Source: Takakia lepidozioides
Taxonomy: Eukaryota; Plantae; Bryophyta
Reading direction: 5' to 3'
Assembly: GCA_030704615.1 (NCBI GenBank)
Contig: CM060733.1
Span: 49,848,001 to 49,912,000 of the forward strand
DNA: 64,000 nucleotides
Shown here: positions 2,253 through 61,593 of the stretch, piece by piece
Numbering within the stretch: the first letter of the stretch is position 1
How the letters are laid out: the number at the start of each line of letters is the position of its first letter
Notes under the pieces: generated by a model
Seen by the model: the letters and a program-made list of their open reading frames with translations, nothing else
What the model was told of the DNA's origin: nothing
The model's database searches: none
Made by a program: the position numbers and the translations under genes

Positions 2253-5140
2253 GAAGTTTGTCTTCCTCTACAGACCTCCCATCCCCGGCAATCGACATGA
2301 AACTGTTTGTAAAAAATCTCAACACAATGCGGCTCGGACAATGCACACGGATCAGCTCCCAAGTTTTTGAAGTTCCCAGAGCAGTGAAACTGTTTGACCA
2401 ATACCTGAACGCAATGAGGTTCGGAAAATGTACAGCGATCAGCCCACAAGTTTTTGAAGTTCGCAGAACAGGACTATTCTTGCCAGCAGCGGAGCTAGCG
2501 GGAGGCTGGTCAGGCCACCCCAAAGTCCCACGGGAACATGTGGAGGAGGCCACGCATGCCATGCGTAGTGCACGCGCTGCCATGGCTGCTCCTTCTCCAA
2601 CTTTTGCCCACTACTCTCCAATCTGGCGATGGCAGCTCTGATGACAATCAAAACATATTTGCCTTCCATTGTAGCTCGCACACTCGACTGACCACCAACA
2701 ACAATCGCCCTCTCTCTCCCTCAAGATGGTTGGCAGGGAAAACAAATCGCAACGTGAGACACTTCCATCGAACGAGATGTAATGAGCTCACTCGCTCAGA
2801 GTCGCAAAACTGAAAACCCTAGCACAAAGTTGGGTAATAACTAACTGCCTGCATGTTTGCAATTCAAGTTGGGGCTGCACAGTTGCTCTTGCTATATGGC
2901 TCCCTGTCAGCTAAGATAGGGCCCTGGTGTCTTGCTTACATGGAGTGACTTCCACAATTGAATGCACACCAAAAAAGTGCATCCACTCCTCCAAGTCTGC
3001 AAAGCATTCCATCACAAATCATGCACGTCTACATCCCGGTATCTGTCTATGAATTTTCTTGTCAAATCTCAGCTTTCCTCGGGTGCACAGTATTGCAAGC
3101 TCCACAATTTGTCCACCAACCCACTAGGTGTCTTCGCATTCTATTCTTCAATCCCAGGCTTCATGCATTTCTTCTACCCAACTACAACCCCTACAATTGT
3201 AATCCATGCCATTCGCTCCGCGTGTGGAACTCACCAGTGACCTATCTTGGCTAGGCACTATAATCTCCTTCTCGTTCTTTAATACCACATGATCCCAAAC
3301 TGATCATCGCTCTAAACACGGTTTGCAGCTCTGAGATCTGGAATTTGCAAGTGCTTTTCGAGAAATATCTGCTGTAGTAGGTACAGTACTTGTCTCGCAA
3401 GAAAGATTGGTTTTCATGCCGGTAGCCTTTTGGCAGTTGTGGCAGATCTGCCTACCAAAATATGTTTAGAAAAGCCAGGCCAGTAGGCATGTCTAATTGT
3501 GGCTGAACACATACATTTTCTTATGAAAAGGATCTCATCAAACAGAAGAAGGGTTGGATTCCAGTGTTGCATACTATGAATATCTAGAGTGACTATGGAC
3601 TTAGTCTCGTGCATATGCACCATCTTTTCAGTCCTTAAACATGCAAGTGACAAAGCCTTCATCTAACAACAGAGCTGTGGTCTCATCAATCCGAGCACAC
3701 ATATAGACAGGCACACGGAGCACAACAGCAATGCCACACTTCTACGCATGGAAGCCTATAGCGTGGCCGAAATCTCAGGTGCAGCTCCACATCTGTCTAC
3801 AATCATAAGGCTTGAAGAGTCTGGGCGCGCAAGCAAGCATGGCACCCAAACTCTTTCCTCGGTGAAGGTGGGCAGAAGCACATTGGCATTCAGATTGAAA
3901 ACTGAGGGCATCACAAGTGCACAGGCAGGCCATTCTATGAAGCCTGTTGCAGCATCAGCCATTTGCTTGGGGATCAGAATCCACACGCGCTGCTGTGCTC
4001 CTCCCTCACCCTCCACCTTCCCACTTTCTTTCCTAAGCAAGGCCTCCTGCCTTTATACTCTAACAAATGGTGACGAGGTTAGGGTTGAGATTCGAGGATT
4101 TAGGGCTAGGGTTTAGAAGAATGGCAAGAGAATTCAGATTTTTGCCTTCCGCAATTGTAGCTTGAGAAGGCCAGTGTATATGCTGAATCTATGGACGCTG
4201 GCAGGCCCATTCTGCGTGAGAGGCCTTGACTGACATTGACAACAATATGAGGGGCCTTTCTGTGAAACTGCTCACGCGAACTTTGGACTCAATTTGCAAA
4301 CTGGGATTTGGTATGGAGGTAGAAACGTTGTTGCCAGCTCTACCTTCACTCCCTTTTGCAAGTGACTCCAGCCCCTCCAAATCATTTCCTTGCACCGGCA
4401 CAAATGAGCAGCGACTGCCTCTGAGATCTGTGAGGCAGACAGTCTCCAGACTCTGGCAGGCTAACTTACCACCGGACCAGCATTTCAGCAATCATCCAGA
4501 ATGTCTGAATACAGTAATGGTGAACCACTTGCCATTGGATGTTTGACATTTGCATGAGTACAATTCCATATATCAACTGTCATTAATTAACCTGCCTTCT
4601 GCAAAAGAGTTAGCAAGTACTCTAAAGGAGTGTTTATTAAGCATGTGAGATCATCTAACTAGTTAGTAGTCGCTGGTGCAATGCTTACTGATACAGATAC
4701 AGGAGTCATCCATCAGTAATGTTCCGCTACCACATTCTCATTAACTTGCTGGCTGGACATATGGAATTTATCAGTTAGTTGAAACAGTCAAGACCGCTGC
4801 ATTGCTTGCTTGCTCACTTCGTGATGTCTCTCAAGGTTGTTTCCTACCCATGCAAATGCTGGTACCATGTCATCCAAGTTCATGACAAACTCACTGGATG
4901 CCTTTCCGCAGACCAAATTTGATCCTAGCTAACTGCATTTCAATCCCCACTGTTTTACAATTCTCATCAATCTCAATTGAGAGAATATATGACAGAGACA
5001 ATGTCAAAATCAATGTCAGCTGATCTGATGGCTTCATAGTGAAACAACTCTAACAATGTTTGTTCACTGCACAAGACAACGAACCCGAATAGACTGGCAC
5101 CAGGGGCAGGGGGGAAAACGAACAAAACTCCACCCCAGCA

Positions 5141-8100
5141 CTACGCACTGATATTCGGCCGATTCCCAGCAAGAATCAAGGAGATTTCTAAGCCTCGGCT
5201 GAAAGCTTGGTTGAACACAAGGCGTGTCTGGAAAGTAGAAACGAATGGAAACCATGACAAGAAGGCAATGGGAAGGAATACCACCATCCCCATACAAGCA
5301 TCGTACACCCTTGCAATGGTGCGCACTGATTTCCACAAACCCACCCACTCCATAACAGGCCTGAATGCTATTGCAATCTGTCACACAAACACTGCTGAAT
5401 CAGAAGAGAACAAACAAAACTGCAACCTGAAACAAAAACACAAATGCGTCAGACAGACATTCCTTCATTTTGACCACACAAGATCACAAATGCCAAAGGG
5501 AGCATAACAAACTAGACTTCAACTACATAACATGGGGTTGACAAAGAGGGGTTGGCTACGAACAAAGATCACATTTCCACAGTAGTCGATAATTCAGCAA
5601 ATAAAGTAGAAGAGCAAGAGGAGAAAGTGTAGAAAGCAGGAGCTGGCACGGACAGAGGAAACTTACAGAAATAAGGCCCCAGCCTGTGGGAATGTATGCC
5701 AGAGCCATGGCAAACACATCACCAACTGTGAGAGGTGACTTGACCACAGCCACCACAAGGCCTGCAATGAGACCTATGAACAAGAAACCCTGAAATAGCC
5801 GTACTGCTAGCTGGAAGTTGGCTGAAGCTTTCTGGCTGAAGGTAAAGACCTGCCAATACAGTTAGAATAAAATTGTCAAGAATTTAGTGCAATTTGGTGT
5901 CCCTCTTTTTGGGACAAGTCACGTTATTATGGATCGCAAATTTGCAATGCACCAACAGCTTTTGTTCTTCAACTCTTGGTTAGCCAATACTCAAACACAT
6001 TAGTACTAATAATACTCATTGGAAGGCTTAAGTCATAGTTTCTCATGCCATTACTGAAAATCATACAATCACACACAACACCATGAAAGTCCTAACTACA
6101 GATTTTCCTTGCAAGTTAGACGTGGTCAGCATTTGAACTCACCTTGAAGATCATCACTATTGCTACTAGCACCAACCATGAGTAAGCATACACCTGAATC
6201 ATTCCAGGTATACAAACCACGAGTAAGCATACACCTGAGTGCCATCATTCCAAGAGATAGATATACACTTACTTCTACAGGTTTCCAATGTTGGAAAACC
6301 ACTAGCGTATGGTCGGGCTAGGGATTGAACCTAGGACCTCCCCCATTCCGGTGGGGTGCTCTACCATTGAGCTACCCGTCCCTTTTTGTTCTCATAGTGC
6401 CGTGCAAGGGCTATAGCCTTGACACCTCCAACACTCCCCCTCAAGGCATAGCCCTTATAGCTGATGCCCACCCATTCTGACCATCGCCCCAACCTTGGCT
6501 CTGATACCATGTTGGAAAACCACTAGCGTATGGTCGGGCTAGGGATCGAACCTAGGACCTCCCCCATTCCGGTGGGGTGCTCTACCATTGAGCTACCCGT
6601 CCCTTTTTGTTCTCATAGTGCCGTGCAAGGGCTATAGCCTTGACACCTCCAACATCCAAGCCATTCCAAGTCATTAAATTTATGCTCCTCACCATTCAGA
6701 CCCTTATGTTAATGACTTTCGGGTTCCATGCTGAATATGACACTTCCTTTTCAAGGGGCATGTTATGCAAGGATATGGGTATGTCACTTGTGGTCATATA
6801 GAGGCAAATTCATTATCAAAAACACATCAGCAAACTGAACTTGGATTGGCTTTCAACCGGCTGCTACGAGGGACTGGAATCAAAGACACAAGGACAAGTT
6901 GCGTCATCAAACAGCCCTAACTTTGCCTCAAACTCTGCATCAATCAGGACTACAGTTTTGCTAGAAACAGAACACTCTTGATCTCTTCATGTAAGTAATC
7001 CTAGTCCCCCAGAGAATAGACAGCTGAAGAGTTGCCGGAAGTACTCACTATGATTTTGGTATTGTGGTTATCCACGTGAAGAGCATACACAACCCCATAC
7101 TGAAATAAAAAGAATCGCAAACTCAATATGAACTCCCAAAACCGGCCCCTCGGTGAACGGATGTGCTCCTGCATATCAGCCACTCAAAAGTACATCAACT
7201 TGTAGTTAAAACCAATAACAAGTGCATGAAGCTAGCGTGAAGCTAGACTGCAAATGAGTCAAATGGGAGGTTTTCTTCCAATGCCCGTCGCTTTCTCCAG
7301 AAAGAAAGAACCGTCCACAAAATCCCAAATACATTCCACAAGAGACTGGTTTTTCAAATGAATGATCTGGACCTTGCCCTTTCCTCTCTTTCCTCTTGAA
7401 ATTCTCATAGTGTCTGTGGCATTTGCCTCATTAGCTGGGGTTGCCTTTTCTGGGATGAGGTTTACTAGGCCAACCCCTGGTCGGCCTGTGCTGGGTCTGT
7501 TTCTTCACCCTTTCTCTTGGCTGGCTGTATGACGTATGGTCTATAAGATATTAACCCCTTTCCACACGCAAATGAAAAGATTTTGTTGAGAAAAACAAGA
7601 AAGAAAGGGAGAGAGAGCTCACTTGCTCCTCAGCCCACCAGGCTTCCCAGCTGCTATCACTCTTAACCCCAATACCACCTTTGTAGAGTAACCAGTTTGT
7701 CCAGTTATCAAAATCCTCCACTGTCCTGCACCAACCAAGCAGAGGAAACTCAGACTTTGGATCACTGGGCACAAACTATAGGTCCTGTCTCCAGCATTCT
7801 ATTCAAAATTGTGCAAATGTTCTTTAGGCAGGAGGAAGGAGGGTGTACATACTTTTGCCACTCAAAACCGGAAGGGTTGAAGATGTACGGAGCAAAAAGC
7901 CATGATAGAGCAAGAAACCAACTGCTGAAAGTAAGCAAGATGTAGGTAACGGCTGTCCGGTCCTCGGCCCCGTAAGCCAAATACACAATCAAGAGCATTA
8001 TTATCTCCAACCTGCACATTAGCATGCACAACAGAAACATAAAGAACAATAACCGGGTAAAACAACACACGGAGAAAGAAGGCAAACAAATAGTAATCAG

Positions 8101-11100
8101 AGAGGTAAGAAAAACCACATCCAGAGAAGACAACAAGAAGTGTTTTGTACCCATGTGAGGCCTGTAGGACCAAAAACACACATAGCGAAGCTCTCAAGAT
8201 TAAGAAATTCCCATCAACAATGTTTGGACACAGCTTCTGGGAGGTGGCATTCATGGCCTGTCTTTCTGGGTTTTCTTGGTTGGGTCTGAGTCCCACTTGC
8301 ACTTGCACTTGCAGCTTCTTTGCTTAATTGAAAAACAAAGTAGGGCACATCAAGTGTTTCAACTCTTGCCAAGATTGTCATCAAGCTTTTGCTAAAGAGA
8401 TTCCATATAAAGGGCTACAAGGTCATACAACATTTTCTAAGAAATGAAATGAAATAAAATGGTACTTTGTAACATCCGTGAGCAGGACAAGAGGAAATGA
8501 AATGAAGTGACAAGAGGAAGAAAGAAACAAGAAGAGAAATGAAATGAAATGAAATGAAATGGTGCTTCTTAACAAGAAGAGAGAGGGGCCACAAACAGAC
8601 CAAAGCTCAAGGGAAAACAAGGAACGAGAAGGAACAAATTAAATAATACTTCATACTTTTCTACTTCATAACGACAGAAAGAGAAACAATACATGAAATG
8701 AAATGGTCCTATTACTATTACTGTTAGTAATGGTAGTACCATTACCGTAACCTAAAGGGCCCAAGGACCAAGGCACTCAATAGAGATCAAGATGTGCTAT
8801 ACCTATCCGAGGGGCTCATTCCAGTAGTGTACCTCGAAATACACAATTCGTTCGGGCTTTTCAGATTTCCTCTAGAAATCACTTCACACAGGCATCAATC
8901 TGCTGTGTGTGAGCTGCCCAGCAATTAGGCCTCAAGATTTTGGAAGTTGGTGAACAGAGGTGCAGGGACTATGTTCTTGATCCCTGCACCTCTGCTCACC
9001 AACATAAACATAACATAGTCCATATCTTTACGTCGACCCAGCTCCTATTTCTCTGGAAGCCTGCCTGGACTCCAAATCGACCAAGAGACAATCTGCATAT
9101 TAATAGCTTGCCAACTGCGTTAAGTGTAATGCCACAGTAGTTCCCAGGCTCTTCTTTGTCACTTTTCTTATAAGTTTATTTCCTAGGAGACAGAAAGAGA
9201 CAAAAGGAATTTTGTAAACATCCTCAGGAATGTCTAGAGTTACTTCTGTAGTGCCAAATCACAAGCCCAATTCCTGTCTGTTATTGCAATATTTGCCTTA
9301 GACCACAAAGAAGTATAAGAACTTACGCTTTGACAAAATGACTGCGGGAGTACAGGCGATAGTTCTCAGCGAAGTTAATATGGCGCACCACAAACCCTCT
9401 TCCCGTAGCACGGTACTGCACATAACCAAAATTCAAACGATGAAACAAGCAAGGCCTAGTCCTGTGTGACATACAATTGCGAGTGTCATGGTCAATTGCA
9501 AGTCCTGTCCAAAAAACTGCGAGTGTCATTGTCAAGGCTACAGGGCCAGTACTGGGAAACAGAAAACAGCCAAACCAGCCTGAACATAGCTGTCCCTTGG
9601 TCCTTTTCGAGCAGCGGAGGTAGTATAGAGGGATTAGGGAGACGGTGAGTACCTTTGCACCCCCGTGTAGAATGGTCCGACCGAAATAGTGAGTACGTGT
9701 CCCCAGTGAGAATGTAAAGAACACTGAACACAATTGAAGCTGCATGGTACAGAAGCTGATTGCTGCCTGCGCTCAACAAAAACCTAAATGAGCACAATTC
9801 CTCTCTTGAACATGATGACTGGAGCTGACCAACCCAATTCATAGAAAGTCAAACGACAAATTACCCAACTAGATAGCTACAAGATAGATTGGTTCTTTTT
9901 GCACTTTAGGCCACAGTCATCCCATAAATTCTTTGATCGCGATATGGACATTAAAATCTTTTGTTATATCTGTCTCTCTTACAAACCTATTCCTGGAAGG
10001 CTGTTGACAATAAGAGTATGCAGATAAGCTGCCAAGCATCTGATCCTCACACTCAGCAACGGACTGGCTGTTCCGGAATGGGCAATAGTCTCTTCCCCAG
10101 GTTCTCTCATAACAGAGACGGCAGTGTATAAAGAACCTCATGTTCAAGGGGGACCCTGAGGACCCAGGGGATGAAGTAGAGCTAAAACCCCCTCAGAGAC
10201 TCCAAATGCTGCCCCAATATTGGTAATCTGTTCCTCCTTCCAAGGTGTTACAGTCAGGACACATCTAGCCTCAGGGGCCGTCACTCAAGAGAACTTTAAA
10301 AAAGACATCAAGGGTTGAAATGAAATGAAATGAAATGGTCCTTTATAGCGTTCGCGGAAAGCTCAAAGAGCTTATGGGACAGAAGGGAAAAACAGGAAAG
10401 AAAAGGAGAGAAAGAACAGGGAACATGTCAACAGAAAGAGGGCAAGCAAGCCCAGACGATAAAAGAAAGAACTTTCCAACAATCACCGGAAGAAAACAGA
10501 GCTTATGGGATAAAGAGTAATGAAATGAAATGACACTCCCACCCTGAACCTCCCAATGCCCTAAGGAAGAGAGGGAGATAGAGCTGCAGACAGGTGATAA
10601 GGCTGCAAGCTCCTATCATCATGGAGAACCAAAAATGTCTCATGATAGAAGTGCAGTTTTGTTGTTAGAGTGGCTGGTTTCCACATCCGCCTGACGTGCA
10701 GTTTCATAAGTTCTCTTCTGATGCATCTATTGCAGTCCTATTTGGATGCAATATCCACCCACTCCACATTTTGTGGCAGTAGGGCAGCAATGCAGAGTCC
10801 AATGCTCTGGAAAAAGTTGGACGCTTGAGCATAACATGACTGCTTAGAACCAGCTGTTTTGAGCCTGATAGATGTTGTGAGGGCCCAGGCTATCAACTCT
10901 TTGGGTGGAGGACCTGTAATTTTTTAAGAAAGATTGTCAGCCGGAAGATGGCCGAAAGATGGGCTCGGTTTAAAGGGGGACACATGAAAAATCCCACACA
11001 TAGAATTTGTTATGGTGTTCTCCCTCTAGCTCCAAGCTTCCGTGGAGGAAAGACGATTGCAGCGGTTCCAGATTTTTTCCCACCAGGAAACTGCTACAGC

Positions 11101-23100: not shown

Positions 23101-26100
23101 TCCTGACATAAGCAGACGATGAGTTTGGACAGTCTTATTTTGTAAGGTTTGGACTTCACGTGGACATTACTACTGCTCTCCTATTTCATCATTGTTCCTC
23201 TGGATATCCAGAACATCTTTAAGCCCTTCCCTCCTTGGACAGACACAATACGACCCAAAAGCTTATCCTCGCCAAGCCACCAAAATGCCTACCAAACAAC
23301 AAACAGACGAGGGGAAATGATTTGGGCAGAACAGAACAGAACACAAGCAGAAGCGGAGGCAAATGCATGAATGCTAGGAGTATTCAGCCATCAAAGCAGT
23401 ATTTGTGCATTGCTTCAGTTTTGGTGCTTGTTGGATATGTAGACCTATCCAATAAGCCCTTGCGGACATCACTGGGCCCATCTCGTCCCTTAATTCTTAT
23501 TTTTCAACTGCCTCTACAGGGAAATCTGAGGCTCCTACTTTTGCCTTCTTCAAGATACCACTTGCTGACATTGGTTTTCATTACGAGGATACGAGATTGC
23601 AACACAACGATGCAACACTACTATCTCTTAAACTGATTTGAAAATCTCTGCTTGTGGAGACTTATTGTTAGGGACCCACAATTCTTTTTCCTTTCTACCT
23701 TTGGTTCTGCCAAGCAGATGGCAGAACATGCAGCATGGCTACCAGCACCATGCCATGTGCTAGAGAAAAAGCCAGGCTGGAGATTGAAAAAATTATCGTT
23801 CCATATCAAATTTGGGGACACTACTATGCCTACTTAGTGACAGAATCCCTGACAACTGTGTTCCATTCAAGGAGATGCCTGGATATATATCTACATGCCC
23901 ACTTCATTTTCCTCGTGTCATGCTTGGAATTACACATATACACAATCCCTTGACGAAAAGTTGTTCTTCAGCTGCTACCCATGCAGAAATATGGTAGGAA
24001 ATGCAATCAACAACTTCCATCACATTTTACATTATAACTACAAAGTCTGAACTATCAGAATGAAGGGAAGGTGCTCACGAGGCATAATTGCGCATTCTCT
24101 CATACATACCACGCCCAACATAATATCGTTCCTGAGAGAACACAAATGATTAGAAGATAAAAATACATTGCCTGCATTAACAGCATCAAATGTGCATCAA
24201 AGGAGTCATTAATGATAAACTGCCCCCATCTCAAATCTCCCAGAAAATTCCAGACCTACAGTCCACTTCCTACAAATTCCTACGAGTGACATATCCTACT
24301 GACCTGGTTGTCATCAAACAAGTGCAATCTAGAAAGAATGAGCATCTCAAATACTGAAGCAAAGGTTATTTGAGTCCTCCTGGAGTTCAGATGAAAGATG
24401 CAACTATGTTCGCACTGCACAGAAACGACTTATTCATATGCCACCTATGCAAGGGGACGTTCCAGGAAGCATCAGATACCTGTTGCAACCACTTGATGAA
24501 CTGAATGACATAGAGATTTGAGCATTTGTCAGCTTGCCTACGAAACCATGGAATGCGGTTCAGAAGTGTATGGAGTAGGTATGCCCCAGCATAACTTGAC
24601 AAAACCAGATAAAAGATTTTGAACCACGCTGTTGAGCCTGTATGCCTATGATCTTCCAGAAGCATCTTCCTGCCACACAAATCATCTCAATGTAAGTAGT
24701 ATGCCGCACCTCTTGTAAATGGTAGCATTAGTTGTACTCTAGCTCGGAGTCAATAAGGCACAGCAAATGGATACCCTCTTCATAACTGTCCTTGAATCAA
24801 GGAAAAGACCTTGATGTACAGATCCTTTCAGGATCTTAAAAATGAGGAATTTTGAGCAGAACCCAGTATGCTCTCCTCATCCCTCCTGTTGACTTGAGAG
24901 AGAGATGTTATTAACATTCATGACATACAACAATCTGAAACCCACATGTTTCAGAACAGCGTATAGCCTAAGCTGGTATCATAAGAGCAGGCATCTAGCA
25001 ATCTGCGAGATAATGAACTGAAATATTCAAATGTACATAAAGACAAACGACTAGAAACAGGGTTACTCATGACTACCAGCAATGGTGCTTTATAGAGCTT
25101 ATGGGACAAAATGGAAGAAAACATGAGAGAGGAAACAAAACCAGAACCCAAGAATAAGAACTAATGTTCTAGCGATTGTCTAAGGGTGAAGGCCTCGTGC
25201 AGGTAGGCTGCCAAACATTTTTGATCCTCATAGTGGAAGACTTCAGTGAGAGATTGGGTTCCACTGAATAAACAGTGGAATCTCCCACGAATCTCGTACT
25301 ATAGAGGGCAGTAGAAGAAGTGTTCTTCAGTTTCAATTTCCTGGCTGCGGTCCTCCCGTTGCAGGTTTTCCCATCTGCCAGTCTCTATCCGTAGGTTGTG
25401 GGAACCCACCCTGAACCACCCCAATGCCCTCAGGAGGGAAGGAGATAAGGATGCTGAAAGGTAATTTGGTCTCAAGATTCTATAATCTCAGAGCATCAAG
25501 AATGTCTCTCGATAGAAGTAGAGCTTTGTCGTGATTGGGTAGCTTCCAAGTTCTCTTGACATGTAATTCCATAAGCTCTCTCCTAATGAGTTGTTGCGGT
25601 CAAATGTACTGGATACTCTTCAGCACAAAAATGAGAGTCCGTGAGGTAATGCCCAGAGAAACTCACACATAGAGGAAGGTAATGGCTCCCGACGCGGCTC
25701 CCAACCAGAAGAAACGAAGGAGCATTCTCAAGACAGTGCGGGCACGGGTGCTTCTGTAAGCTCCAATCATCAATATCACATCCAACACCGCTGCACATCC
25801 ATGCCATGTTATTAGGTGGTTTCAAAAATACCATGACAAAATAGAGATTAAAATACAGGACAAAAACAACCTCTTTAATCAGTTTAAGATTCAGTACAGA
25901 GACAGAACAACTGTCAAATCCTAGGTATATCATTCCAGTGGACAACACTTCAGTTGTTGTAGCCCCATCCTAACTTCGTATCCATTAGACCTGCAATCCA
26001 TCGATATGTAGGATTATGGCCACATGTGGTTCCTCTCATTCTCTTGTCCCATAAGCTCATTGCGCTTTCCGTGATTGTTCATTTCATTATGGAAAGGGGA

Positions 26101-29100: not shown

Positions 29101-32100
29101 TTCCCCCCAAATTAACAGATACAGAGAAGTTAGACAGAGCCTTCTCTGCTGTGTAAATGCACTGCATCACCCACCCAACAATAGTATAAACAAGTCGGAT
29201 TGTATGTGGGGTGCCCAGAATACTCCTTCGAGCGAACATTTTAACCAAATGGGCCTGGAGACTTGAAACTAAACCTATCCTTTCATTCCACATTATGCAC
29301 TACTTCACGACAATACATGCATTTGTCGCAACCCCAAAAGGCACACCCCGAAAGGCTCCTAATGGAGCCCATCCCCGACAGGGGGCAGTAGTAGCCGCAA
29401 GGTGAAGTGGCTCTTAGTTACGCCGGCTCCGGCCAGAGTCCTCTCTCTCTCCCTGTAGCTCTCTGTCCTACTTCATTTGAACTCGTGTAAATACTGTTTA
29501 CTACCAAAACACATGTACTCAGGACAACATCGAATACGACCCTTGGTTTTCCTTCAGCAGAAGAGAAAACATAGTCATCTTACTCGACAATGACACGCAG
29601 CACTCTGCATTTGAGAATTTCATCCCATAACTAGAGCCACCAGAGAGTCCAGTAGCTTTCAGCAACCACCCTCATCCAGGTTACTACTGTACTCAGATAC
29701 CAACTCTTTGTCTATAAAATTGGTACACCCACTCTTCTGGATGTATAGTTCTGTGTTCAGAGCTAGGATCAAGACCATACTAGGTGATTTCAAGAGACAT
29801 GTTGGTTCGTACATTCAGTGACCCCAGAACTGCAGCCACCACTGACACCTTTCCAGAAATACCCTCATCAAGTTAACTGCTGGAAGTAACAGGTCATTAA
29901 GCCTCCGCAATTGGAACACCCACTCTTGAGGCTGTATGGTTCTATACACAAAGCTAGGACCAAGAATTGTGAGTTTAAACTTTATACACCTTCAGCATCA
30001 CTTACCCTCTTTGTATCAGAAAAGTGGAAAAACCATCAGTCAACTACCTACAAAAGCTATAACATGCATCGCGCACATCCACCAAGAACAGCAACAAGTA
30101 CTCAAACAATATGTTGTCCCTTACTGGCATACAACCAGCTACAGCACCGAACTGTAGCTGGTTGTATGCTCATGAGTTTAAAGACCGTACCGCTTGCACA
30201 TTGATTCTCTTCTCAGAAAGTGGCACCATCTGTTATAATTCTCAAGGACTCGGCCGTAGACGTTATTGATGGCCGCATCATCCAGCTGTTAAAAAACCCA
30301 CTTCTCAGGTCAATCTCCTGAACAGAGGAAATTCTTTCACAAAAACTCTCCTAAGAACAACAAATGCACCCTTTAAATGTAACCTGTAGCTGAACTGTGG
30401 TGTCTCACATCTTGAATGCAAGAAATTGTGTAACCCAATCGCTTGATGGCACTCTACCATTTTTTGCTGCTGCCAAGGACAATCTTCGACCAACCATGAT
30501 GCAAGTGCTAGGACCTCTAAGGAATATTGCCATGCACTGCTAGATCTTCGGGTTACACAATTTCTTGCATTCAAACTGTGAGACACCACAGTTCAGCTAC
30601 AAGTTACAACCAACCGACCATGATGCAAGTTCTAGGACCTCTAAAGAATATTGCCATGCATTGCTAGATCTTTGTTTGAAAGTACCTTGCTATCCTCTGT
30701 ATCAGAAACCACGCCCAGGCGAGACTGTGCATTGGCAAGCAGTAGAACGAGATGCTCCCTCTGGTTTGCCACATTGTCTTTCTACACTCACAATGGTATT
30801 AACCAGTTAACCAAACAGTTCACCTTCCTGGCTGCTAGATGATGCCAAATGCCCTCTCTCGTGTATGATATGAACTTGCAAAATCCAGGACCCCCCACAT
30901 GTAAAAAAAACCTGTTTGTACACCCAAATAAGTCAAAGTATGCAGTCCACATTGTATCATGAAATACTTTCCAACTATACACATTGCTTCATCAAATTCC
31001 TGACAGAAGCAGATAAGAGACTGAGCATTCCAATCTTCATTTCCACAAATGCCTCATTGGAACTTGCTTCACAGATAGAAACACATTACCCAACCACTTA
31101 AGAACAACAGCATTATGCTGTACGGCTACCTTGACAGCACTGCATACCTGAAATCCAAATGTGTAGTGCAAGAAATCAAAGAGATTCAAGGGCCTGTCTT
31201 CAGGAAATTCATAGTCATCTGGAAACCTTGGCATATCTGTTGTATACATGAAGGCTCTGGTAGCACCTGTCACCTAATTAGAATGACCACAAAGTCGATC
31301 AGTGCTCAACATTTCATTCATTCCGCCATTGCTTCCCTCTACTAGTGCCTCTTCGGACATAGCCAATCCCTGGAACACACTTTGAGGACCAGAGATGACT
31401 GGGGGCAGATCAGCATGACGCTCTTAAACTTAGATTTGGGCTTCTTTTTGGGCCCCACTTTTTTACTTGCTTTTCATTTGTTCATAAGCTCTTTGAGTTT
31501 TTCACAGATGTTAAAGTAACAATTGATTTTTTCTTGTTCCTCCTCTCTTCTTTCATAGAAAAGACCATACATCAACCTCTACTAGAAACCTTACCGCAAA
31601 ACATCTCGCAAGGTTGGGAAAACCAATACAAGAGAGAAGCGGGAGATGCCAAGCAGTAGAGAAGCCACAAAAGCAAGACAAGAGGTTGCAGGCCCAAAAC
31701 AAAAATAGTGGCTTCCGGAAATGAGCATTCCAAACATGTCAAAAGCTTTCAAAATTTGGAACATGGGTGAAAGACCCCGGTAAAGCCTTTTTCTTAAAGC
31801 CTCTTCATGCACCCCAGTAGAGAGCGAGACAAGCTTCTGCTGGACAGTGTGGGTTGCATGTTTGTGTCCTACAAGCACTTCATGCTCCTGTGGACTCCAT
31901 ATATTTGCTATTATCTTTAATTCGTTTGTCTGCTCTCTTCCACATGTCAGCCTTCCAAAAATTGAATTGAGTTCAGTCCTGACTACATCTCTATCACAAG
32001 TGTCCTTGCATATCCTAGTGCATACATGTTCATGGAGACAAAGCATTTGGACTGTTCTACCAGTTCAAATGTAAGCACTGCACATGCCTAATCATACAAG

Positions 32101-36316: not shown

Positions 36317-38669
36317 CCGTTAGCCTTCTTATGCACCTGGCACATCTGTCTTGATGATTCACTTCGAACAGCCAGAAACGATGCTAGTCTGCAGAGAACC
36401 AGAGCTCGCAAAATAAGAAATTCAAGAATCCAACGGAGACGCAGCTCAGAATAAGGCAAAACCGAATTCTCGCAGCTCCTCCGCAAGCATTCAGCGAAAC
36501 CTCGAGCAACACACCCCGCCACGGCAGCAGCTGGACCAGCCGAAAACACTACAATGCCAGATCAAGCGAGGTCGCAAGGCGAGTCCAAGGAAGGGAGATG
36601 AAACATGAAACCCGATGATGATGCAAACTGTCCTCCACGTTCCTGAATAAGCTCCCTCTCTCCTCTCTCCGAAGATCCACCACAGAGAAGTACCGACCGA
36701 CCTTCACAATCTACTTACTCCTAATCCACGCGTTACGCAACCTCTCAGGTTTGCTGTCTACGTCTACGATTTGTTGCATACTCTACCCGACGGCCTCACA
36801 TCCGCTACAAAGTAAAAGCCCCGGAAAGTACCAGGTGCTCACGAACTCGACGGTGGTAAGACCAGTGGACTCGATCACAGCAAAGAAACGGCAAACAAAC
36901 AGTAACAGTAACAGTGTCCGATCCCCGCACATGAAACCGGAAGATGCAATCCCTTTGCCTGCCCTGTGGACCGGGCCCACCCTTGCCTCGCTCAGCCTGC
37001 CACTTGCTTCTTCTTCACTTCCAACCCCTCTGGGAAACAAAACCCAAGGTCTTACCTGCTAAGTTGTTATAACTTGCTGTTGCCTCCTGCTATAAAAGGA
37101 GGTTGGCAATGATTATGAGAACCCGCAAATCAGAATCTCAGCAGCCAAGATTTGAGCCCAAGGTCAGCTGGTGGGTCCAGCTGTGGGGTTGAGCAGCTCA
37201 AAGGTAGCAAAGTGTGGGGAAGGAGGCGGGAGGGAGGGTGCAGGTTTTTGAAATGCCCGCCTCATCCGGACCTCGCTTTGCTTGCAAGTTGTTGGGAGGC
37301 GTACGGAGAAACAGTGGGATGTGTGTGAGCAGGCTACTTGTGTAAGTACTGGACCACCAGCCCAGCTGTCAAACCCCCCTCTCCTCCACTCCCACTCCGA
37401 CGGGGATCTGCTGGTCAGGCTACGGTCGCCAGTAGCATCATCCTGTCAGTACTGAAGATCCGAAAATGCCGAAGTGGACATATAGATGGCCCAGACACAA
37501 GTCAGTGCCGACTGTGCTCAAACTTTCAAGTGTGAATCCAGTCAGATCGAACATTGGAGTGAGTGCAGAATTCAAAACTTCATACCGTATCTCCATCTCT
37601 GCTATTTTCTGAGCTGTACAGTAGGTGCCTGGAGAGTTCTGCAGCTGCGTGGATGAATTGTGAGGTGTGACACAACATTCCCAGGCTTTCATGGGGTGGC
37701 TAGCATGTATGCGAGATCGAGGATAATATTATATAGAACTTGGTCACGTTGCACGCCTGCACGCCGGCAACCAGGTGGGCTCCATGCTTGTTCAACCTTC
37801 ACTCCACACTTCATCAACATCACCTTCATCATCACGGCTTCTACAAAAGATATAAATCTCGTTATACTTATGAATGGGTTTCACAATTCTCCATTCATTA
37901 GGTGTCCGAAGGAGAACAAAATATGGTCTTGCTGCTTCTTTATTGTTGCTGATCGCTCTCACAAATGCTCACACAATATGGTCTTGCTGCTTCTTTATTG
38001 CTGATTGCTCTCACAAATGCTCACGGGGATCTATCTAGCACTCTCACAAATTTTGTGGCCAAAGAAAGGTGCTAATTGCATCAGCACATTGTCGCCTAAA
38101 AGGCATGGACCCAAACTCATGGAGAGGATTGTCTACAGGGTTGCAGGAGGGAATCCTGGCTAGACTCCATGCACCTACATGCGAGAGTCGAATCCCACTC
38201 TTGCCAATGGCCTTCTGTAGTATCCAGCCACGCAAGTTCCTACCTCGCCAATGGCCTTCTGTACTATCCAGCTGCACAAGGTCCTACCTCGCCTCACCCA
38301 AGTTATGATCTATTAGTATTCAAAATGCAATGAGGCACCCATCAAACTTCCTCCCTAACCGTGCACTTGAAAAAAGGGGGCAGTAGCCATAAGGTGAAGT
38401 GGCTCTTAATTATGCTGGCTACAGCCAGAGTCTTCTCTCTCTCTTGCTCTCTCTCTCTCCCACTTGGGTCTCTGTCCCTTTTGATGAGTACTGTAGCCTG
38501 GCTCCGAGCTTTTTGTTCACCCTCCATGTAGACCCATTGTTGCTTTGCACATATGGTCAGCCAGGCTAGTCACAATCCATGATACATAAGCCAAGTTGTT
38601 GAAGAGAAAAGCATGCGTTATTTAAACTTGGTTATCTGCCGGAATCAACCCCAGTAACTCGTGGACAGC

Positions 38670-44256
<5,587 letters not shown>

Positions 44257-51479: not shown

Positions 51480-53341
51480 TAAAAAGACCCAAGCGGGGTG
51501 ACTGTACAAATGGGTGTAACTGTCCCCAAGAGGAAACAACCAAAGCTCGTAGAACTAGATATATTAACACAATGAAAGAAATCAAACTATTCTAGTATCA
51601 CCTACAGCCTGAAGAAGGTCAGACAACAGGAAAGAGGATCAGAGAGTGCGGGGAGGTGAGATGAAGCCGCCCCTGCCCTCTGCCCGACGTAAAATAGATT
51701 GAGCTTGAGCCTTTTGCAAAGCAACAGAAACTCGTTGTCTAAAGAAAGCTACAAGAACAGAGGCGTATGGGCTTCCAAGGCTTTTGTTTTCTGCTGCACA
51801 ATGGGCACATGTACAAAGGAACTCGTTGAACTGATGATGCAAACAACCAAAGATCTCGATTGCCAAAGGAAGGAATATGTATGTGGAATGACGTGCCCGA
51901 TAGTCATGCTCATTTCCCTGCGCAGTTACTGAAGCGGCAACTCCCTGTGATGAGGCTGTGCGGGGCAGAAGATCCGACCTAGTAGGATCAGCGATAACAA
52001 CGTCCGCCAATGTACGTAGTCAGTCCTATGAGAGAACAATGTCAACCCGTCGTCGAGTGGAATAGTGATTGTGGGTCGATGGGAGTATGTGCACCTGCTC
52101 TCGAATGACATGTATCCCAGCATCACGAGCAACCGTAGCTGCTGCATCCCGGACGACGTCATGGGTCGCAGTGCGTTCTCCACCGCAGGGGCAATGAAGA
52201 AGATGTACGCCAATTGAATCGAGAGGATGGCGACAAACACACTGTTGTAGTCCTAACACAGAGGGATATGGAAGACCCAGTCGAACTCGTAGGGAGGTGG
52301 TAAATACAGCAGAAGACATACGGAAGGGTGCAATGGTTGGTCGTACCGTAAGCCACGCGCCTGCTCCGGGCCCTGCGCACGAGAGAAGTCTGGCCCAATG
52401 TGCATTTGAAGGAGCGTCGGAAAGCATGCTGGCAAATGAGTGTCGGTGCACGCGTTCCATGATGGTATCCTGTAAATGCTCCAGACCTTGAGTGACCAAC
52501 TGTTCAAAGGGTGGCAGACAAGCCCGTGTTGGTGTTGGAATGAGATCCCGCGCTGAACGAAGATGTTGCTAGAAGGATGAAGAGCCATCGTCGATGTGGG
52601 CATCCACCTCCATGAGAAAAGGGCGTTGCTGACACAGAAACCGAGATGCCAAGGCTGGAGCGACTAAAGCCCAACTACCTAGAAAGGCAGCAGGGGCAGT
52701 GACGAATGTAAATAATAAACCCAATCCTCCAGAAGAGATCGGGAGGGTAGCCTGACGACATGCCAAGGGCCCTTGCTCACTATCAAATGCACCTGGGCCT
52801 AATAGACAACCAAAAATCCCCCTAACAGTCGTATCAAAAGAAGACAGAAGCTCCACAAACTGGGGAGTGAGGGGCGCTGTAAAAAGCATTTGGTGAGAAT
52901 GTCATGGGCTACCTGCATATCGCCTAGTTTGGGAAGAAGCTCTATATGGCTTATATCCTGTAGCAAAGCGTCTTGGAGGAAAGATGTTGTGTAAGGGGTA
53001 CTACCAAAGGGAACACCTAACACTCGAATACCCTCAGATGGTGCTAAAAAGTCGACAGGGGGCACGAAATCTGAAGGCAGACCAGAGGGTGACCAAACTG
53101 TGGATTTGTGAGGTTGAACAGTGAGCCCAAGAGAGTGAAGTTGGGAAGCAAAGTGATGGAAAGCCAAAAGGATATCAGTGGGAGGGCCAATGATGTGGGT
53201 ATCATCAGCAATAGAAGGAAATATACAGGATTGGAAGGCTTGCGCAGATGAGCGAAAAGCTCGGAAGTGGGCAAAAGCAAAAAGAGGTCCCCCTAATGGA
53301 TCGCCCTGATGGGTTCCTACTTCGGACTGGATTATAGAAAC
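51480..53341 (-). mobile_element. 5'-truncated, decayed CRE-like non-LTR retrotransposon (RT, CCHC finger and restriction-like endonuclease)
   Basis: RT motifs GTHQGDPLGGPLFA, SIADDTHIIG and GIRVLGVPFGS. C-terminal GAGAWL...LRVRLGLP...CVC...HLLHC...THD...RVDIV...ADVVIADP...PLAIEIFG...RVSVALQKAQA. Frame disruption near 52860 and stops near 52020. Confidence 0.85.
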
Positions 53342-55570: not shown

Positions 55571-56760
55571 ATATCTTAAAACATAGGGTCTACAAAGAAG
55601 AAGTGCAAATTATAATATTCTCTACATTCGATTGAGGATGGAAAAATTGTAATCCTCGTGCTTTATGTAAATGATCTCCTTATCACCGGTGACAACACCA
55701 ACAAGATAGAATGGATTCAATCACAGCTGAGCAGGAGATTTGATATGACCAATGTCGATCATATGAATCACTACCTACGGATAGAATTTATCTACTTTAA
55801 CAGGGGGATATTCATGACTCAGCGGGCATACACACTACAAACTCTGGCACAATTTGGCATGACCAATTGTAATCCTGCCTCAACACCCCGATGTTTGAAA
55901 ATCTTAAGCTGGTAGCAGATATGGGAGCACCACTTGAGGATGCATTGGAGTACCACACTATCGTAAGGCAAATTGATATATCTTACGAATACGAGACCAG
56001 ATATAGCTTTTGCGGTGGGAGTCATCAGCCGATTCATGACAGCCCCTCACGAGCCTCACGTGGCTGCTGCCAAACATATCCTCAGGTATCTAAAAGGTAC
56101 AGTCGAGTATGGATTGTTCTACGAACAAGGGGGAGAGACTGTGATATCTGGATGCTGACTGGGCCGACGACTCAGACACTAGAAGGTCAACCACATGATA
56201 CGTGTTTAGTCTCGACAATGGCCCAGTCACATGGACAAGCAAGAGACAACCAACAGTCTCTTGTTCATCAACCGAAGCCGAATACCAAGCTCTCACGGAG
56301 GGAACCAATGAGTCTATCTGGCTGAATCGGCTCACCTCAAAGCTACAGCAAAGGGACATCCCGATAAAATTGTGGTGTGACAACATGAGCTGCATCAAAA
56401 GTGCTAAGAACCCGGTGTTTCATGGACAAACGAAACACATTAAAGTGCAACATCACTTCGTACGTGAGAAATTTGGGACAGGGGAGGTTGACCTAGAGCA
56501 TGTTCGTACGACAGATCCGATTGCAGTCATTCTTACGAAGCCACGAGGGAAAGGAAATTCCAAAAGCTGAGGGAGCAATTGGGTGTGTGTTCATTATCAA
56601 ATCTTCAAAAATTAGAAGCAAAGGCTAGTAATCCTTTCTCAATAGCAGAGAGAATCAGTTCAACTAGAGGAGGCAACTACCTTGGTCGCATTCACAGCTA
56701 TTCTCCCTGGAATTATCTAATTTTTTGTCATAGAAGACATGAGAGTAAGAGGAGGTGTCA
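55570..56760 (+). mobile_element. Ty1/Copia RT-RNase H fragment, decayed
   Basis: LYVNDLLITG (YVDD motif, mutated), IYLTNTRPDIAFAVGVISRFM, WTSKRQPTVSCSSTEAEY, WCDNMSCI...NPVFHGQTKHIKVQHHFVRE, with frameshifts. PPT-like GAGAGTAAGAGGAGG followed by TGTCA at 56756. Confidence 0.9.
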
Positions 56761-59311: not shown

Positions 59312-61593
59312 TTACCTGCCCTCCAAGTCACTGAAGACATCAGAAGTACCAACTATGCTTCGAGAAGGTAATTGGGGCGCATCTTCCTGAGGCCCCATAA
59401 TATTGGAAGTGTCGGCTACTGATCGAGAACTATTCCCACTTTGTGGATCAAAACCCGGGGCTAATTGGAGGCTTGGGAGTTCAGATGCCCCCAAAAGCAT
59501 TGACACTACTTGTGTCATAGATGGTCGTAAAGCAGCTCTCTCCTCTGTGCACATCAGTGCTATTTGTATCACCCTTTTCACCTCTTCTTCATTGTATCTT
59601 CCCCCTAGTTTGTCGTCTACAAGGCAAAGAAGGTCATCATCTCTCCATAATTTCTTGGTCTGCAAAATGGAAACCACGATTCAGTAAGGTTTCATTCCAT
59701 GCATATATATATAGACGCCTCCCGAAGGGAGCGTAAATTATGGTGTCTCTTCACCACAAGGGCTACTGCCTTCCAGCTGAAAGGTGGACACCTTCATGAC
59801 ACACCAGACTGTGGTTTGAACCCACAACCACATCCAATGTGGTATGTGCCCATTACCACTGGGCTACATGCTGGTTGTCAAGCATTCCATGGATTTATTT
59901 CACAGGGAAGGATGATAATGTGGATGCAAGGAGCTGGGCAGAACAAGAGATGTTTTAAGAGAAACGAAATGATACTTAATAACGTCTGTGGGAAGCTCAA
60001 AAGCTATTGGGACAATAGGATGAAAAAAACAAAAAAGAGAGACGGGCCAGAAACAGCCCAACAGCAACTAAAGCTGAGGGAATTGTCTAAGAGTCAACAG
60101 TACTTCATGCAGGTAAGCTGCCAAGCGTATGTGATCCTTGTAATGGAGGACCTCCGTAAGAGATTGGGTATCCCGGAATAGACGGTTGAATTTCCCACGA
60201 ATCTCATAGTATAAATGGCAGTGACGGAAGAAATGTTCTTCACTTTCAAGTTCCCTGTAGTTCCCAGCACCAGCGGGACATACTTGGTCATCAGGTTGCA
60301 GATTTTCCCACCTACCAGTCTCTATCCGTAGACTGTGGGAGCCCACCCTGAACCTCCCCAATGCCCTTAGAAGAGAGGGAGATAGAGCTGCACAAAGGTA
60401 ATTAGGCTGGAAGATCCTATCGTCATGGAAAACCAAGAATTTCTCCTGATGCAATTGCAGTTTTGTTGTTAGAGTGGCTGGTTTCCATGTCGCCTGACAT
60501 GCAGTTCCATAAGTTCTCTTCTAATGCATCTATTGCAGTCCTGTTTGGACACAACATCCACCCCCTCCGTAGAGAGAGAAAGAGGACGTGCAAAAGAGCT
60601 TATCACATCCGCAGGAGGCCAAACAAAGTCCATGGGGTACGGTAGAATTAGGAGTCTTTTGATGAACCCCAACGCTGCTCCAAGGTGGAGTGCCTAGACA
60701 GTTAGCTGCTCCAACTTCAGGTCCATATAGGTCAGAGAAATGAAATGATACTTCATAATGTCTGGAACGTCCGTGGAAGAGAACAAACGAAAAACACTAT
60801 GTTGGCCACGTTATGTTGGCCACGGGCCCCCAACCATGGGACAAAGTAGAACAACAAGGAGGCATAAGCGAATTAAGATCTATGCGTAAGGAGTAGAAAG
60901 TCAACATTTTGGTACAGGTCGCATGGGTTCAAAACTTACCCAATCTATCAGGAAAGCCCTCTCTGTGGAGTACTCAGCTTTCGTATTGCCCCTGCCACTA
61001 GTTGCCTCCAGAAGCACAACACCAAAGCTGAAGACATCCACCTTCTCTGTCAGCTGGCCCCGCAGAAGCTCTGGAGCTAGATACCCCCTGTATACAGTAA
61101 ACCGTATTTATCGACTTCAAAGCCTTATGACAGACCACTAACTTAGATAAAACTCTAACCGTATTCTACAGCCTTTGCTCCTCTATCATTCTGCTAGGAA
61201 AAGAAACTGAAATTTATGCTTGGCATGAAATGAAAAGCAGGAAAAATGACTCCTCAAATGTTCACTAGTAAAGAGGAGAATTCAAGAAGCTCCAAAGGAC
61301 TTTACCTTGTGCACTAAAAACATCAAAAGTAGGGTCTGAGATGCGAGCAGTTTACATGGTACCAGCGACTTGTGTGATGATGTGGGTTTGATCGTCTGGG
61401 TAAAGCTTCGCTAGTCCGAAATCAGCTATCTTTGGAGTCAGCTTTTCGTCCAAAAGGATATTGGCGGCTTTGATGTCCCGATGTATTATACGGGGCTGTA
61501 CTCCTTCATGTAGATATGCTAAACCTTGTGCAGTTCCAACAGCAATATTGAAGCGTGTCGGCCAATCAAGATGGATGGATTCATATTGAGAAC
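59312..61593 (-). CDS. Receptor-like Ser/Thr kinase (RLK/Pelle, LRR-VIII/DUF26-type exon layout), last three exons; 5' part lies beyond the window
   Basis: Exons 61593-61356 ([22 protein letters not shown]...[14 protein letters not shown]...[10 protein letters not shown]...VAGT), 61087-60940 (GYLAPE...[13 protein letters not shown]) and 59659-59312 (IQIALMCT...[11 protein letters not shown]...EGR*). Confidence 0.9.
59714..59871 (-). mobile_element. tRNA-derived SINE in an RLK intron
   Basis: A box TAGCCCAGTGG, B box GGTTCAAACC, 3' hairpin CTCCC-TTCG-GGAG, (TA)n tail. Confidence 0.75.
59960..60850 (-). mobile_element. 5'-truncated RTEX-like LINE in an RLK intron
   Basis: ORF 60454-60068 encodes [18 protein letters not shown]...VCP...[17 protein letters not shown] (typical C-terminal domain), followed by the 3' UTR stem-loop and ATTTC tail. 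An extra tail unit lies at about 60735-60850. Confidence 0.8.

Follow-up and report, generated by a model that had tools for sequence, protein, structure and literature searches.

The locus considered here raises the question of what kind of element carries a tRNA-like unit inside each of its LTRs, and from which RNA such an element might be copied. In the window that we analysed, the whole 64-kb stretch of Takakia lepidozioides DNA, a complete miniature LTR retroelement of 366 bp occupies positions 6289-6654 on the minus strand. Its parts, together with the intron in which it lies, are as follows.

6655..6659, no strand: TSD TCCAA on the 5' side of the element, read from the sequence and identical to 6284-6288
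6510..6654, minus strand: 5' LTR, 145 bp, with ends TGTTGGA...TCCAACA, matching 6289-6433 at 144 of 145 positions
6531..6602, minus strand: tRNA-like cloverleaf of the 5' LTR, 72 nt, scoring 56.7 bits against the Rfam tRNA model
6516..6519, minus strand: TTTT of the 5' LTR, 6 nt before the LTR end, a candidate weak Pol III terminator and R/U5 boundary
6498..6509, minus strand: PBS TGGTATCAGAGC, corresponding to the 3' end of initiator tRNA-Met, adjoining the 5' LTR and the sole such match in the window
6434..6509, minus strand: interior, 76 bp, G-rich and non-coding by sequence reading and ORF check
6434..6442, minus strand: PPT GAGGGGGAG, adjoining the 3' LTR
6406..6457, minus strand: hairpin from fold prediction, a 17-bp stem with one bulge and arms at 6442-6457 and 6406-6423
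6289..6433, minus strand: 3' LTR, 145 bp, from direct-repeat comparison with 6510-6654
6310..6381, minus strand: tRNA-like cloverleaf of the 3' LTR, 72 nt, scoring 56.6 bits against the Rfam tRNA model
6295..6298, minus strand: TTTT of the 3' LTR, 6 nt before the LTR end, a candidate stop for a Pol III genomic RNA
6284..6288, no strand: TSD TCCAA on the 3' side of the element, 5 bp, read from the sequence
6191..7045, minus strand: host intron of a callose synthase gene, 855 nt, GT..AG, defined by spliced RNA contigs

The LTRs have TG...CA termini that form a 7-bp inverted repeat, and each is laid out as a U3 of about 52 nt, the tRNA-like unit, an 11-nt trailer, TTTT and the 6-nt end CCAACA. 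On the sense strand of the element, T runs of at least four are confined to LTR positions 136-139 of both LTRs. Both tRNA-like units run in the element's sense, the same direction as the PBS and PPT, their scores compare with an Rfam gathering score of 29, and the cloverleaf is their minimum-free-energy (MFE) fold. In the 5' LTR unit the A box TAGCTCAATGG lies at about 6595-6585 and the B box GGTTCGATCC at 6552-6543, and it is inside the B box, at LTR position 108, that the sole mismatch between the two LTRs falls: the G at 6547 is private to the 5' LTR, all other family contigs having A, and the 3' LTR unit carries the majority form of the family, GGTTCAATCC. Rfam matches to ‘Plastid-ycf2’ on the opposite strand, far under threshold, are the antisense of the tRNA-like unit and were discarded. 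No ORF within the element exceeds 51 aa (58 aa at most if ORFs overlapping its ends are counted). Repeat comparison and sequence reading thus confirm the 366-bp anatomy put forward in the sequence-only reading (145-bp LTRs, 76-bp interior, PBS, PPT and the TSD TCCAA), while the Rfam scores and MFE fold bear out its 72-nt cloverleaf with A and B boxes in the sense of the PBS and PPT, and the ORF check its view of the element as non-autonomous.

The 12-nt core of the PBS is the standard Met PBS, which this element extends by CAAGGTTGG, and the match to the plant initiator tRNA probably spans 14 nt. Among plant non-autonomous LTR elements, the Met PBS is the most frequent type (PMC13570524). Self-priming by the LTR's own tRNA look-alike was also considered, and is ruled out given that the 3' end of the look-alike is not complementary to the PBS; Kojima 2024 likewise found no self-priming complementarity in Helenus elements (PMC10886601). 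At the other border of the interior, the predicted hairpin would enclose in its loop the G-run of the PPT along with ~11 nt from the start of the 3' LTR. Its predicted energy of -25.7 kcal/mol (z = -3.0) was equalled by none of 200 shuffles, and it persists in the predicted fold of a 312-nt model RNA.

That the element has moved and multiplied is apparent from contigs of a public DNA run, in which summed depth is 63 in the flanks and climbs to 15,000-95,000 within the element, or 240-1500 times the single-copy flank (485 DNA contigs). The contigs break at 6288, 6289 or 6294 on one side and at 6655 on the other, their flanks being mutually unlike beyond these points, and at least 23 of them diverge exactly at the LTR end. 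The element is consequently one of a highly repeated, interspersed family with precise common ends, as the sequence-only reading had expected, and the depth and the breaks contradict a single-copy origin. At a 10% variant threshold, the only sites flagged in the tRNA unit are those at which this copy differs from a majority that is itself uniform, and real polymorphism among copies is found in U3, at LTR positions 34, 39 and 51. We regard the element at 6289-6654 as young and structurally intact, and its family as abundant. No further copies were found in the 64-kb window. Scans of metagenome collections and prokaryotic genomes with LTR/PBS junction patterns returned no relatives, the two matches obtained (L001 and L002) being dismissed as chance matches because they are the same bacterial sequence, without tRNA or repeats.

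The copy under study sits in sense orientation in an intron of a callose synthase gene, which has many exons separated by GT-AG introns. The exons beside this intron match Pfam Glucan_synthase, and the C-terminal exon of the gene could also be read. RNA contigs of two runs join position 6190 to 7046, and none of the RNA contigs covers the intron flanks of the element. Since the intron carrying the insertion is spliced normally, the insertion is harmless to the host gene, being removed together with the intron.

We consider it probable that the element is a young, intact TRIM of the Helenus type, which lacks genes and replicates through a Pol III RNA with the help of an autonomous element acting in trans. 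We infer that the tRNA-like promoter in the LTR drives transcription by Pol III, which would start a few bases ahead of the tRNA-like unit in the 5' LTR. T4 runs occur solely at 6 nt from the end of each LTR, so that a genomic RNA made by Pol III has to cross the first of them; the polymerase would accordingly have to pass the weak T4 of the 5' LTR at some frequency and to stop at that of the 3' LTR. The resulting RNA would measure ~310 nt, with the tRNA-like unit (~90 nt) as its repeated R and a U5 of only ~6 nt. Initiator tRNA-Met would then prime the minus strand at the PBS and the PPT the plus strand, with Gag, reverse transcriptase and integrase supplied in trans by the autonomous element, which would also make the 5-bp duplication. 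With its TGTTGG...CCAACA ends, Met PBS and 5-bp TSD, the element points to a partner that probably belongs to the Copia superfamily. An autonomous element with matching LTR termini, as postulated in the sequence-only reading, has no candidate within the 64-kb window, and ORF fragments at 51.6-56.6 kb that resemble Copia and LINE elements are without a matching PBS or ends. The best named match of a LINE ORF, at 56% identity, is from the liverwort Calypogeia fissa, a Copia fragment matched only unnamed sequences, and look-ups for exact protein matches returned none.

A local tandem duplication could in principle leave two direct repeats 221 bp apart, in which case a tRNA pseudogene and its surroundings would merely mimic LTRs and the structure would be immobile. 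This explanation has next to no probability in view of the TG...CA ends with their 7-bp inverted repeat, the PBS and PPT placed exactly at the inner LTR borders, the 5-bp TSD, and the fact that contigs of hundreds of further copies diverge from one another precisely at the LTR ends. It might also be supposed that the LTR units are working tRNA genes spread by the element, which would then serve mainly to enlarge the host's tRNA gene set, and the full cloverleaf, high Rfam score, A and B boxes, downstream T-run and A at the discriminator position are all in keeping with this. However, ARAGORN, which detects both units, reports ‘tRNA-???’ with a 2-base anticodon, and neither unit can be assigned an anticodon. 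The anticodon loop has 6 nt in the MFE fold, the alternative of 7 nt requiring a mismatched closing pair and placing a C at the U33 position, and the acceptor stem contains an A-A mismatch, to which the Rfam alignment adds one in the anticodon stem. The unit thus lacks the 7-nt loop, U33, readable anticodon and fully paired stems of a functional nuclear tRNA gene, and the tRNA look-alike in the LTR is not a decoding tRNA. Kojima 2024 similarly concludes that the units of most Helenus families are not working tRNAs (PMC10886601), and we judge the idea of a spreading tRNA gene very improbable here.

A more substantial alternative is that Pol II makes the genomic RNA, as in an ordinary TRIM, starting at a cryptic promoter in the LTR or reading through from host genes. 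The element would then carry the tRNA-like unit along as a passenger, perhaps a SINE or tRNA that inserted long ago into an ancestral LTR, and what this unit yields would be at most a short tRNA-like RNA, terminated at T4 and a dead end. The position of the T4, about 15 nt after the tRNA-like unit and ahead of the PBS, speaks for this explanation and against a Pol III genomic RNA, many transcripts of which it would end before the PBS. Many copies, moreover, lie in genes in sense orientation, as the callose synthase copy does. Some family RNA contigs, from what appear to be mRNA-type libraries, continue into unlike flanking sequence, as expected of copies inside Pol II transcripts, although contigs carry no start, end or strand information and these fit read-through as well as Pol III. 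One family RNA contig runs from LTR position 95 through T4, PBS, interior and PPT into the next LTR, from which it follows that transcripts crossing T4 exist. On the other side, no part of the LTR varies more than U3, which has only ~52 nt, whereas the tRNA unit is uniform across copies; read-through RNAs would be without the terminal R repeats required for strand transfer; and the arrangement of tRNA and T4 is also kept in a distant family from Selaginella (compared by eye). Cassandra, a validated analogue, is itself transcribed from a Pol III promoter in the LTR, and has its terminator there too. We therefore hold Pol II transcription of the genomic RNA to be unlikely, and favour the Pol III RNA copied in trans.

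The known elements to which this one belongs are those named Helenus, or TRIMp3, described by Kojima 2024 as TRIMs with tRNA-derived sequence in their LTRs and ranging from 311 to 1263 bp (PMC10886601). Their conserved boxes are TRGCY...YGG (A) and GGTTC (B), and plant and fungal members have a 5-bp TSD (PMC10886601). The Takakia element has the same architecture, with short LTRs, a PBS, a PPT and no coding capacity within 366 bp; TAGCT..TGG and GGTTC occur in its tRNA-like sequence; TCCAA flanks it on both sides; and contig depth, together with contig breaks at the LTR ends, places it in an interspersed family. The name, which the sequence-only reading had put forward, exists and applies. The element is a Helenus member and represents a distinct family in another host, so that one family and one host are added to a known kind of element and no new kind is created. 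Pol III transcription has been proposed for Helenus and validated for no member (PMC10886601), and the group was described only in 2024 with a single plant example. The Takakia family, abundant and with LTRs that are nearly identical, provides in a second plant host a practical system for testing how an LTR retroelement could replicate from a Pol III transcript with a terminator in its LTR. For genome annotation, LTRs of this Helenus-type family, and not tRNA genes, will account for roughly a thousand tRNA-like matches in the genome.

The only plant Helenus in Kojima 2024 is Helenus-1_SMo, from Selaginella moellendorffii (PMC10886601), and we compared its published sequence (PMC10886601, supplement 2) with the Takakia element by eye and with short motif probes, which match the element far above chance. 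Both elements carry a tRNA-like unit in sense in each LTR and have a 5-bp TSD, and by eye they share the LTR start TGTT.GA and the LTR end TTTTCCAACA. Common to both are also a PBS reading TGGTATC.GAGC followed by ..GGTTGG, over which a 31-nt probe matches at 28 of 31 positions, and, from a motif probe, a PPT ending in GGGGGAG beside TGTT. The tRNA-like parts are ~78% alike by eye and have the same D arm, but the anticodon arm differs, and U3 and most of the interior are unalignable by eye. The two are similar in size, the Takakia element measuring 366 bp against 325 bp, but differ in the LTRs, of 145 nt against 120 nt, and in the interior, of 76 nt against 85 nt. Read by eye, the likeness does not extend at 80% over most of the length, and by this usual rule the two are different families.

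By eye, the two elements differ in the acceptor and T stems of the tRNA look-alike by double (compensatory) changes that preserve these stems, and in both of them a long stem surrounds the PPT together with the start of the 3' LTR, its sequence in Helenus-1_SMo being different. Kojima 2024 mentions neither compensatory cloverleaf changes nor a hairpin enclosing the PPT (PMC10886601). The compensatory stem changes, the 15-17-bp stem that would present the PPT and U3, and the identical TTTT six bases from the LTR end tentatively suggest a further, somewhat doubtful possibility: that in plant Helenus elements the RNA structure itself is under selection, beyond the A and B boxes, with the tRNA-like R region, the PPT hairpin and a leaky terminator acting as cis signals of a genomic RNA made by Pol III. 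Were this the case, these signals would be read by the Gag and reverse transcriptase of the partner, and the lineage would be old and common to distant groups of land plants.

Among other known systems, canonical plant TRIMs and SMARTs, TRIMp2 in Kojima's nomenclature, resemble the Takakia element in size class, short TG...CA LTRs, Met PBS, PPT and 5-bp TSD, and they too often lie within genes or close to them, yet their LTRs, unlike those of the Takakia element, are without a small-RNA gene. SINE2 elements are likewise short, non-coding and dependent on a partner, and have a tRNA-derived internal promoter with A and B boxes. However, they are without LTRs, PBS or PPT, are copied by LINE machinery at their 3' tail and have TSDs of variable length, whereas the Takakia element possesses the full cis signals of an LTR element and a fixed 5-bp TSD, and is not a SINE. 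Retrozymes are distinguished by a hammerhead ribozyme in their LTRs, and no ribozyme family was returned by our Rfam searches. Nor did these searches match 5S rRNA, either in the element (E up to 1) or in the window (at the gathering threshold), which separates the element from Cassandra, the other family with which the sequence-only reading had called for comparison. In Cassandra (Kalendar et al. 2008, 2020) the LTR supplies both promoter and terminator for Pol III, transcription from it has been validated, and the family forms tandem arrays. Cassandra is, like the Takakia element, a non-coding plant TRIM with a Met PBS and a small-RNA module bearing Pol III signals in the LTR, and its transcription by Pol III is validated where that of the Takakia element is proposed. 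The two nevertheless differ in size, Cassandra measuring 565-860 bp and the Takakia element 366 bp, and in the module itself, which is 5S with boxes A, IE and C in Cassandra and tRNA-like with type 2 A and B boxes in the Takakia element.

Read on the minus strand, the 366-bp sequence at 6289-6654 possesses its parts in the order of an LTR retroelement. Two 145-bp direct repeats, which differ at a single base, both start with TGTTGGA and end with TCCAACA, the initiator-Met primer-binding site is the only one of its kind in the window, and no ORF longer than 51 aa lies inside the element. The sequence-only reading of this miniature element (a TRIM), comprising its LTRs, primer-binding site, polypurine tract, target-site duplication and tRNA cloverleaf, was borne out in every structural detail.

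Features of the element and its host intron
6284-6288 and 6655-6659: target-site duplication (TSD) TCCAA, flanking the element on both sides
6654..6510, minus strand: 5' long terminal repeat (LTR)
directly after the 5' LTR, minus strand: primer-binding site (PBS) TGGTATCAGAGC, the standard initiator-Met site
between the PBS-side LTR and the 3' LTR, minus strand: interior, 76 nt, G-rich
abutting the 3' LTR, minus strand: polypurine tract (PPT), the purine run GAGGGGGAG
6433..6289, minus strand: 3' LTR
6531-6602 and 6310-6381, minus strand (the element's own sense): tRNA-like sequences of 72 nt, one per LTR
6191-7045, minus strand: host intron of 855 nt containing the element (spliced contig join 6190/7046)

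The two tRNA-like units score 56.7 and 56.6 bits against the Rfam tRNA model (gathering score 29), and the minimum-free-energy fold of the unit is a cloverleaf. ARAGORN could assign no anticodon to them, the folded anticodon loop has 6 nt (7 nt if a mismatched closing pair is allowed, with C replacing U33), and the acceptor stem contains an A-A mismatch. Consequently, the unit is a tRNA look-alike and not a decoding tRNA, with both its A box (TAGCTCAATGG) and its B box (GGTTCGATCC or GGTTCAATCC) intact.

The element resides in a host gene. Contigs from two runs listed as possible RNA, and which are RNA, join 5377/5667, 5847/6141, 6190/7046, 7167/7622 and 7724/7852, with intron borders that read CT..AC on the plus strand and hence GT..AG on the minus strand. 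Translation of the exons yields the C-terminal portion of a callose synthase (Pfam Glucan_synthase; last exon read directly). Given the join of 6190 to 7046, the element lies within an 855-nt intron of this gene, in the same sense and ~95 nt upstream of the acceptor site, and this intron is spliced out cleanly. Neither RNA run provides a contig on the intron flanks of the element, and there is therefore no sign that this particular copy is expressed.

Several further observations were made at this locus. A 27-nt direct repeat (93% identical) occupies 6171-6197 and 6212-6238; the former copy extends across the start and acceptor site of a 49-nt callose synthase mini-exon (6142-6190), making the latter a duplicated pseudo-acceptor in the intron, between exon and retroelement. 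The exons alone, at 7612-7728 and 7844-7935, are matched by a further DNA contig of 2777 nt (depth 61) and by an RNA contig, with ~15% differences and a shorter intron; both contigs belong to an expressed callose synthase paralogue elsewhere in the genome. Just upstream of the 5' LTR, 6655-6702 (minus strand) bears a weak likeness to the 3' half of the element's interior (5 of 500 shuffles score as high in local alignment), which could represent a decayed older copy, an array remnant or chance.

Contigs of one DNA run and the two RNA runs were aligned to positions 5000-8000 of the window. In the DNA run, the single-copy flank has a depth of 63-71 versus a summed contig depth of 15,000-95,000 over the element (485 contigs), a sum that is not a copy number and that we read only as LTRs numbering from hundreds to about a thousand. 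At least 23 DNA contigs diverge exactly at 6288, 6289 or 6294, and others at 6655, into mutually unlike flanks (consensus agreement 0.4-0.57). Such contigs mark further insertions that share the element's ends, and the element is not single-copy.

The present copy departs from the family majority in its A box at 6367 (A here, G in the majority, giving TAGCTCAGTGG), and also at 6386 and the equivalent 6607, at 6463 and 6484, and at 6525 and 6530. The G at 6547, in the B box of the 5' LTR, is private to that LTR, all other contigs having A, and so the sole difference between the LTRs arose by mutation in the 5' LTR once the element had inserted. Under the substitution rates usually applied to plants, one difference per 145 bp suggests that the insertion is a few hundred thousand years old, an estimate with a very large error. 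The sites that divide the family (LTR positions 34, 39 and 51) all fall in U3, shortly before the tRNA unit, whereas the 72-nt unit has no polymorphic site at a 10% threshold across family contigs, which drop rare variants. This uniformity fits constraint on the tRNA unit, 3 sites versus 0 being a weak test.

Family contigs also occur in both RNA runs, differing from this copy at 5-6 sites, at depths of 42-148 versus 16-25 for callose synthase mRNA; given the many copies, such depth could be background, and it is compatible with Pol III transcription as well as with its absence. Some continue for over 250 nt into dissimilar flanks, which is what copies embedded in Pol II transcripts would produce. 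One RNA contig runs unbroken from LTR position 95 through TTTT, PBS, interior and PPT into the next LTR, and transcripts that cross the T-run therefore exist.

On its sequence, the LTR can be read as a complete Pol III unit made up of four parts:

Proposed parts of the LTR
part 1: upstream sequence of ~52 nt, in which a CAA motif and an A-run closely precede the tRNA unit
part 2: tRNA-like unit
part 3: 11-nt trailer
part 4: TTTT, then CCAACA alone

Runs of at least four T in the element's sense number only two, at positions 136-139 of each LTR. We infer both Pol III transcription of the element and an autonomous partner. Initiation by Pol III would lie a short distance ahead of the tRNA unit in the 5' LTR; the polymerase would pass a presumably leaky first TTTT and stop at the second, in the 3' LTR, yielding a genomic RNA of ~310 nt in which R would be the tRNA unit plus trailer (~90 nt), U5 ~6 nt and U3 ~50 nt. 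The leaky first TTTT would parallel the poly(A) signal in the R region of retroviruses, which is passed over at the 5' end. On the cis signals, initiator tRNA-Met would act as primer, the PPT would prime the plus strand, and integration would duplicate 5 bp of the target; the enzymes would have to be supplied by the autonomous element. The Met PBS, the TGTTGG...CCAACA ends and the 5-bp TSD suggest a partner in the Copia superfamily, as argued for fungal Helenus too (Kojima 2024, PMC10886601); no candidate was found within the window.

Elsewhere in the window, decayed retroelement ORF fragments lie at 51639-53167 (minus strand) and 55891-56570 (plus strand). For a LINE-like ORF, the best-matching relative with a name comes from the liverwort Calypogeia fissa (56% identity); relatives of a Copia-like C-terminal fragment, at 37-51%, occur on many chromosome-sized ENA contigs. 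Both fragments lack the PBS and the ends that mark the miniature element. Tandem arrays occupy 77-1285 (four ~303-bp copies, 79-88% alike), 2105-2471 (units of ~136 bp or 87 bp) and 62519-62941 (three 141-bp copies, 84-87%). A dispersed repeat family has three copies (25195-25550, 60105-60487 and 10538-10683; 64-85% identity), that near 60 kb overlapping a 128-aa ORF without a Pfam match. An 84-nt repeat (81% identical, with a CT-rich run at its end) is found at 29390-29473 and 38382-38465, one copy inside the callose synthase gene and the other beyond it. A second host gene, on the minus strand, is marked at 41365-42064 by two exon-bearing ORFs that match Pfam 2Fe-2S_thioredx (PF01257), the fold found in the 24-kDa subunit of mitochondrial complex I.

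The name Helenus, given in the sequence-only reading for TRIMs with tRNA-derived sequence in their LTRs, is confirmed by Kojima 2024 (PMC10886601), where TRIMp3 comprises Helenus, Ajax and Cassandra, and where Pol III use by Helenus is called unvalidated. Its sole plant member there is Helenus-1_SMo from Selaginella moellendorffii (120-nt LTR, 85-nt interior, 5-bp TSD). Helenus receives only a brief mention in a sugar beet survey from 2026, and our literature search found no report of it from bryophytes. We compared Helenus-1_SMo with the element using short motif probes and a by-eye reading of the published sequence. Probes from the A-box region (21/22), the B-box region (19-20/22), the LTR end with PBS and nine more bases (28/31) and the PPT/LTR junction (17/18) match far beyond chance. 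By eye, the tRNA parts are ~78% alike, with differences mostly in the anticodon arm, whereas U3 and most of the interior are not alignable. Judged from these probes and by eye, the family is a separate one of the same kind; the family and its host are new here, the kind itself having been published in 2024.

Three structural features of the pair are leads, drawn from two families and not statistics. The fifth acceptor-stem pair is G-C in the element and A-T in Helenus-1_SMo, the third T-stem pair A-T and G-C respectively, two more stem differences are compatible one-sided changes, and the D arm is identical. The paired double changes thus indicate a cloverleaf kept by compensatory change, yet each family may have captured a tRNA gene of its own, in which case the differences would be inherited from working tRNAs. 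The second lead is a hairpin at the PPT, in which the interior end (6442-6457) pairs with LTR positions ~12-28 (6406-6423) in a 17-bp stem with one bulge, the loop holding the PPT G-run and first LTR bases (-25.7 kcal/mol, z -3.0; 0 of 200 shuffles fold as well). This stem is retained in the fold of the whole model RNA, a common family variant in RNA contigs changes one of its G-C pairs to G-U, and Helenus-1_SMo has, by eye, a 15-bp stem of unrelated sequence at the same place. Lastly, both families share the LTR end TTTTCCAACA, whereas the trailers that precede it differ. The text of Kojima 2024 (PMC10886601) mentions neither hairpin nor TTTT; terminator is applied there to Cassandra alone, and stem-loop occurs nowhere but in the title of a reference. 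Cassandra, the TRIM with 5S rRNA in its LTRs, is described in the literature as having promoter and terminator in the same LTR and validated transcription from the 5S unit, and the element's LTR would resemble it in holding both within one LTR.
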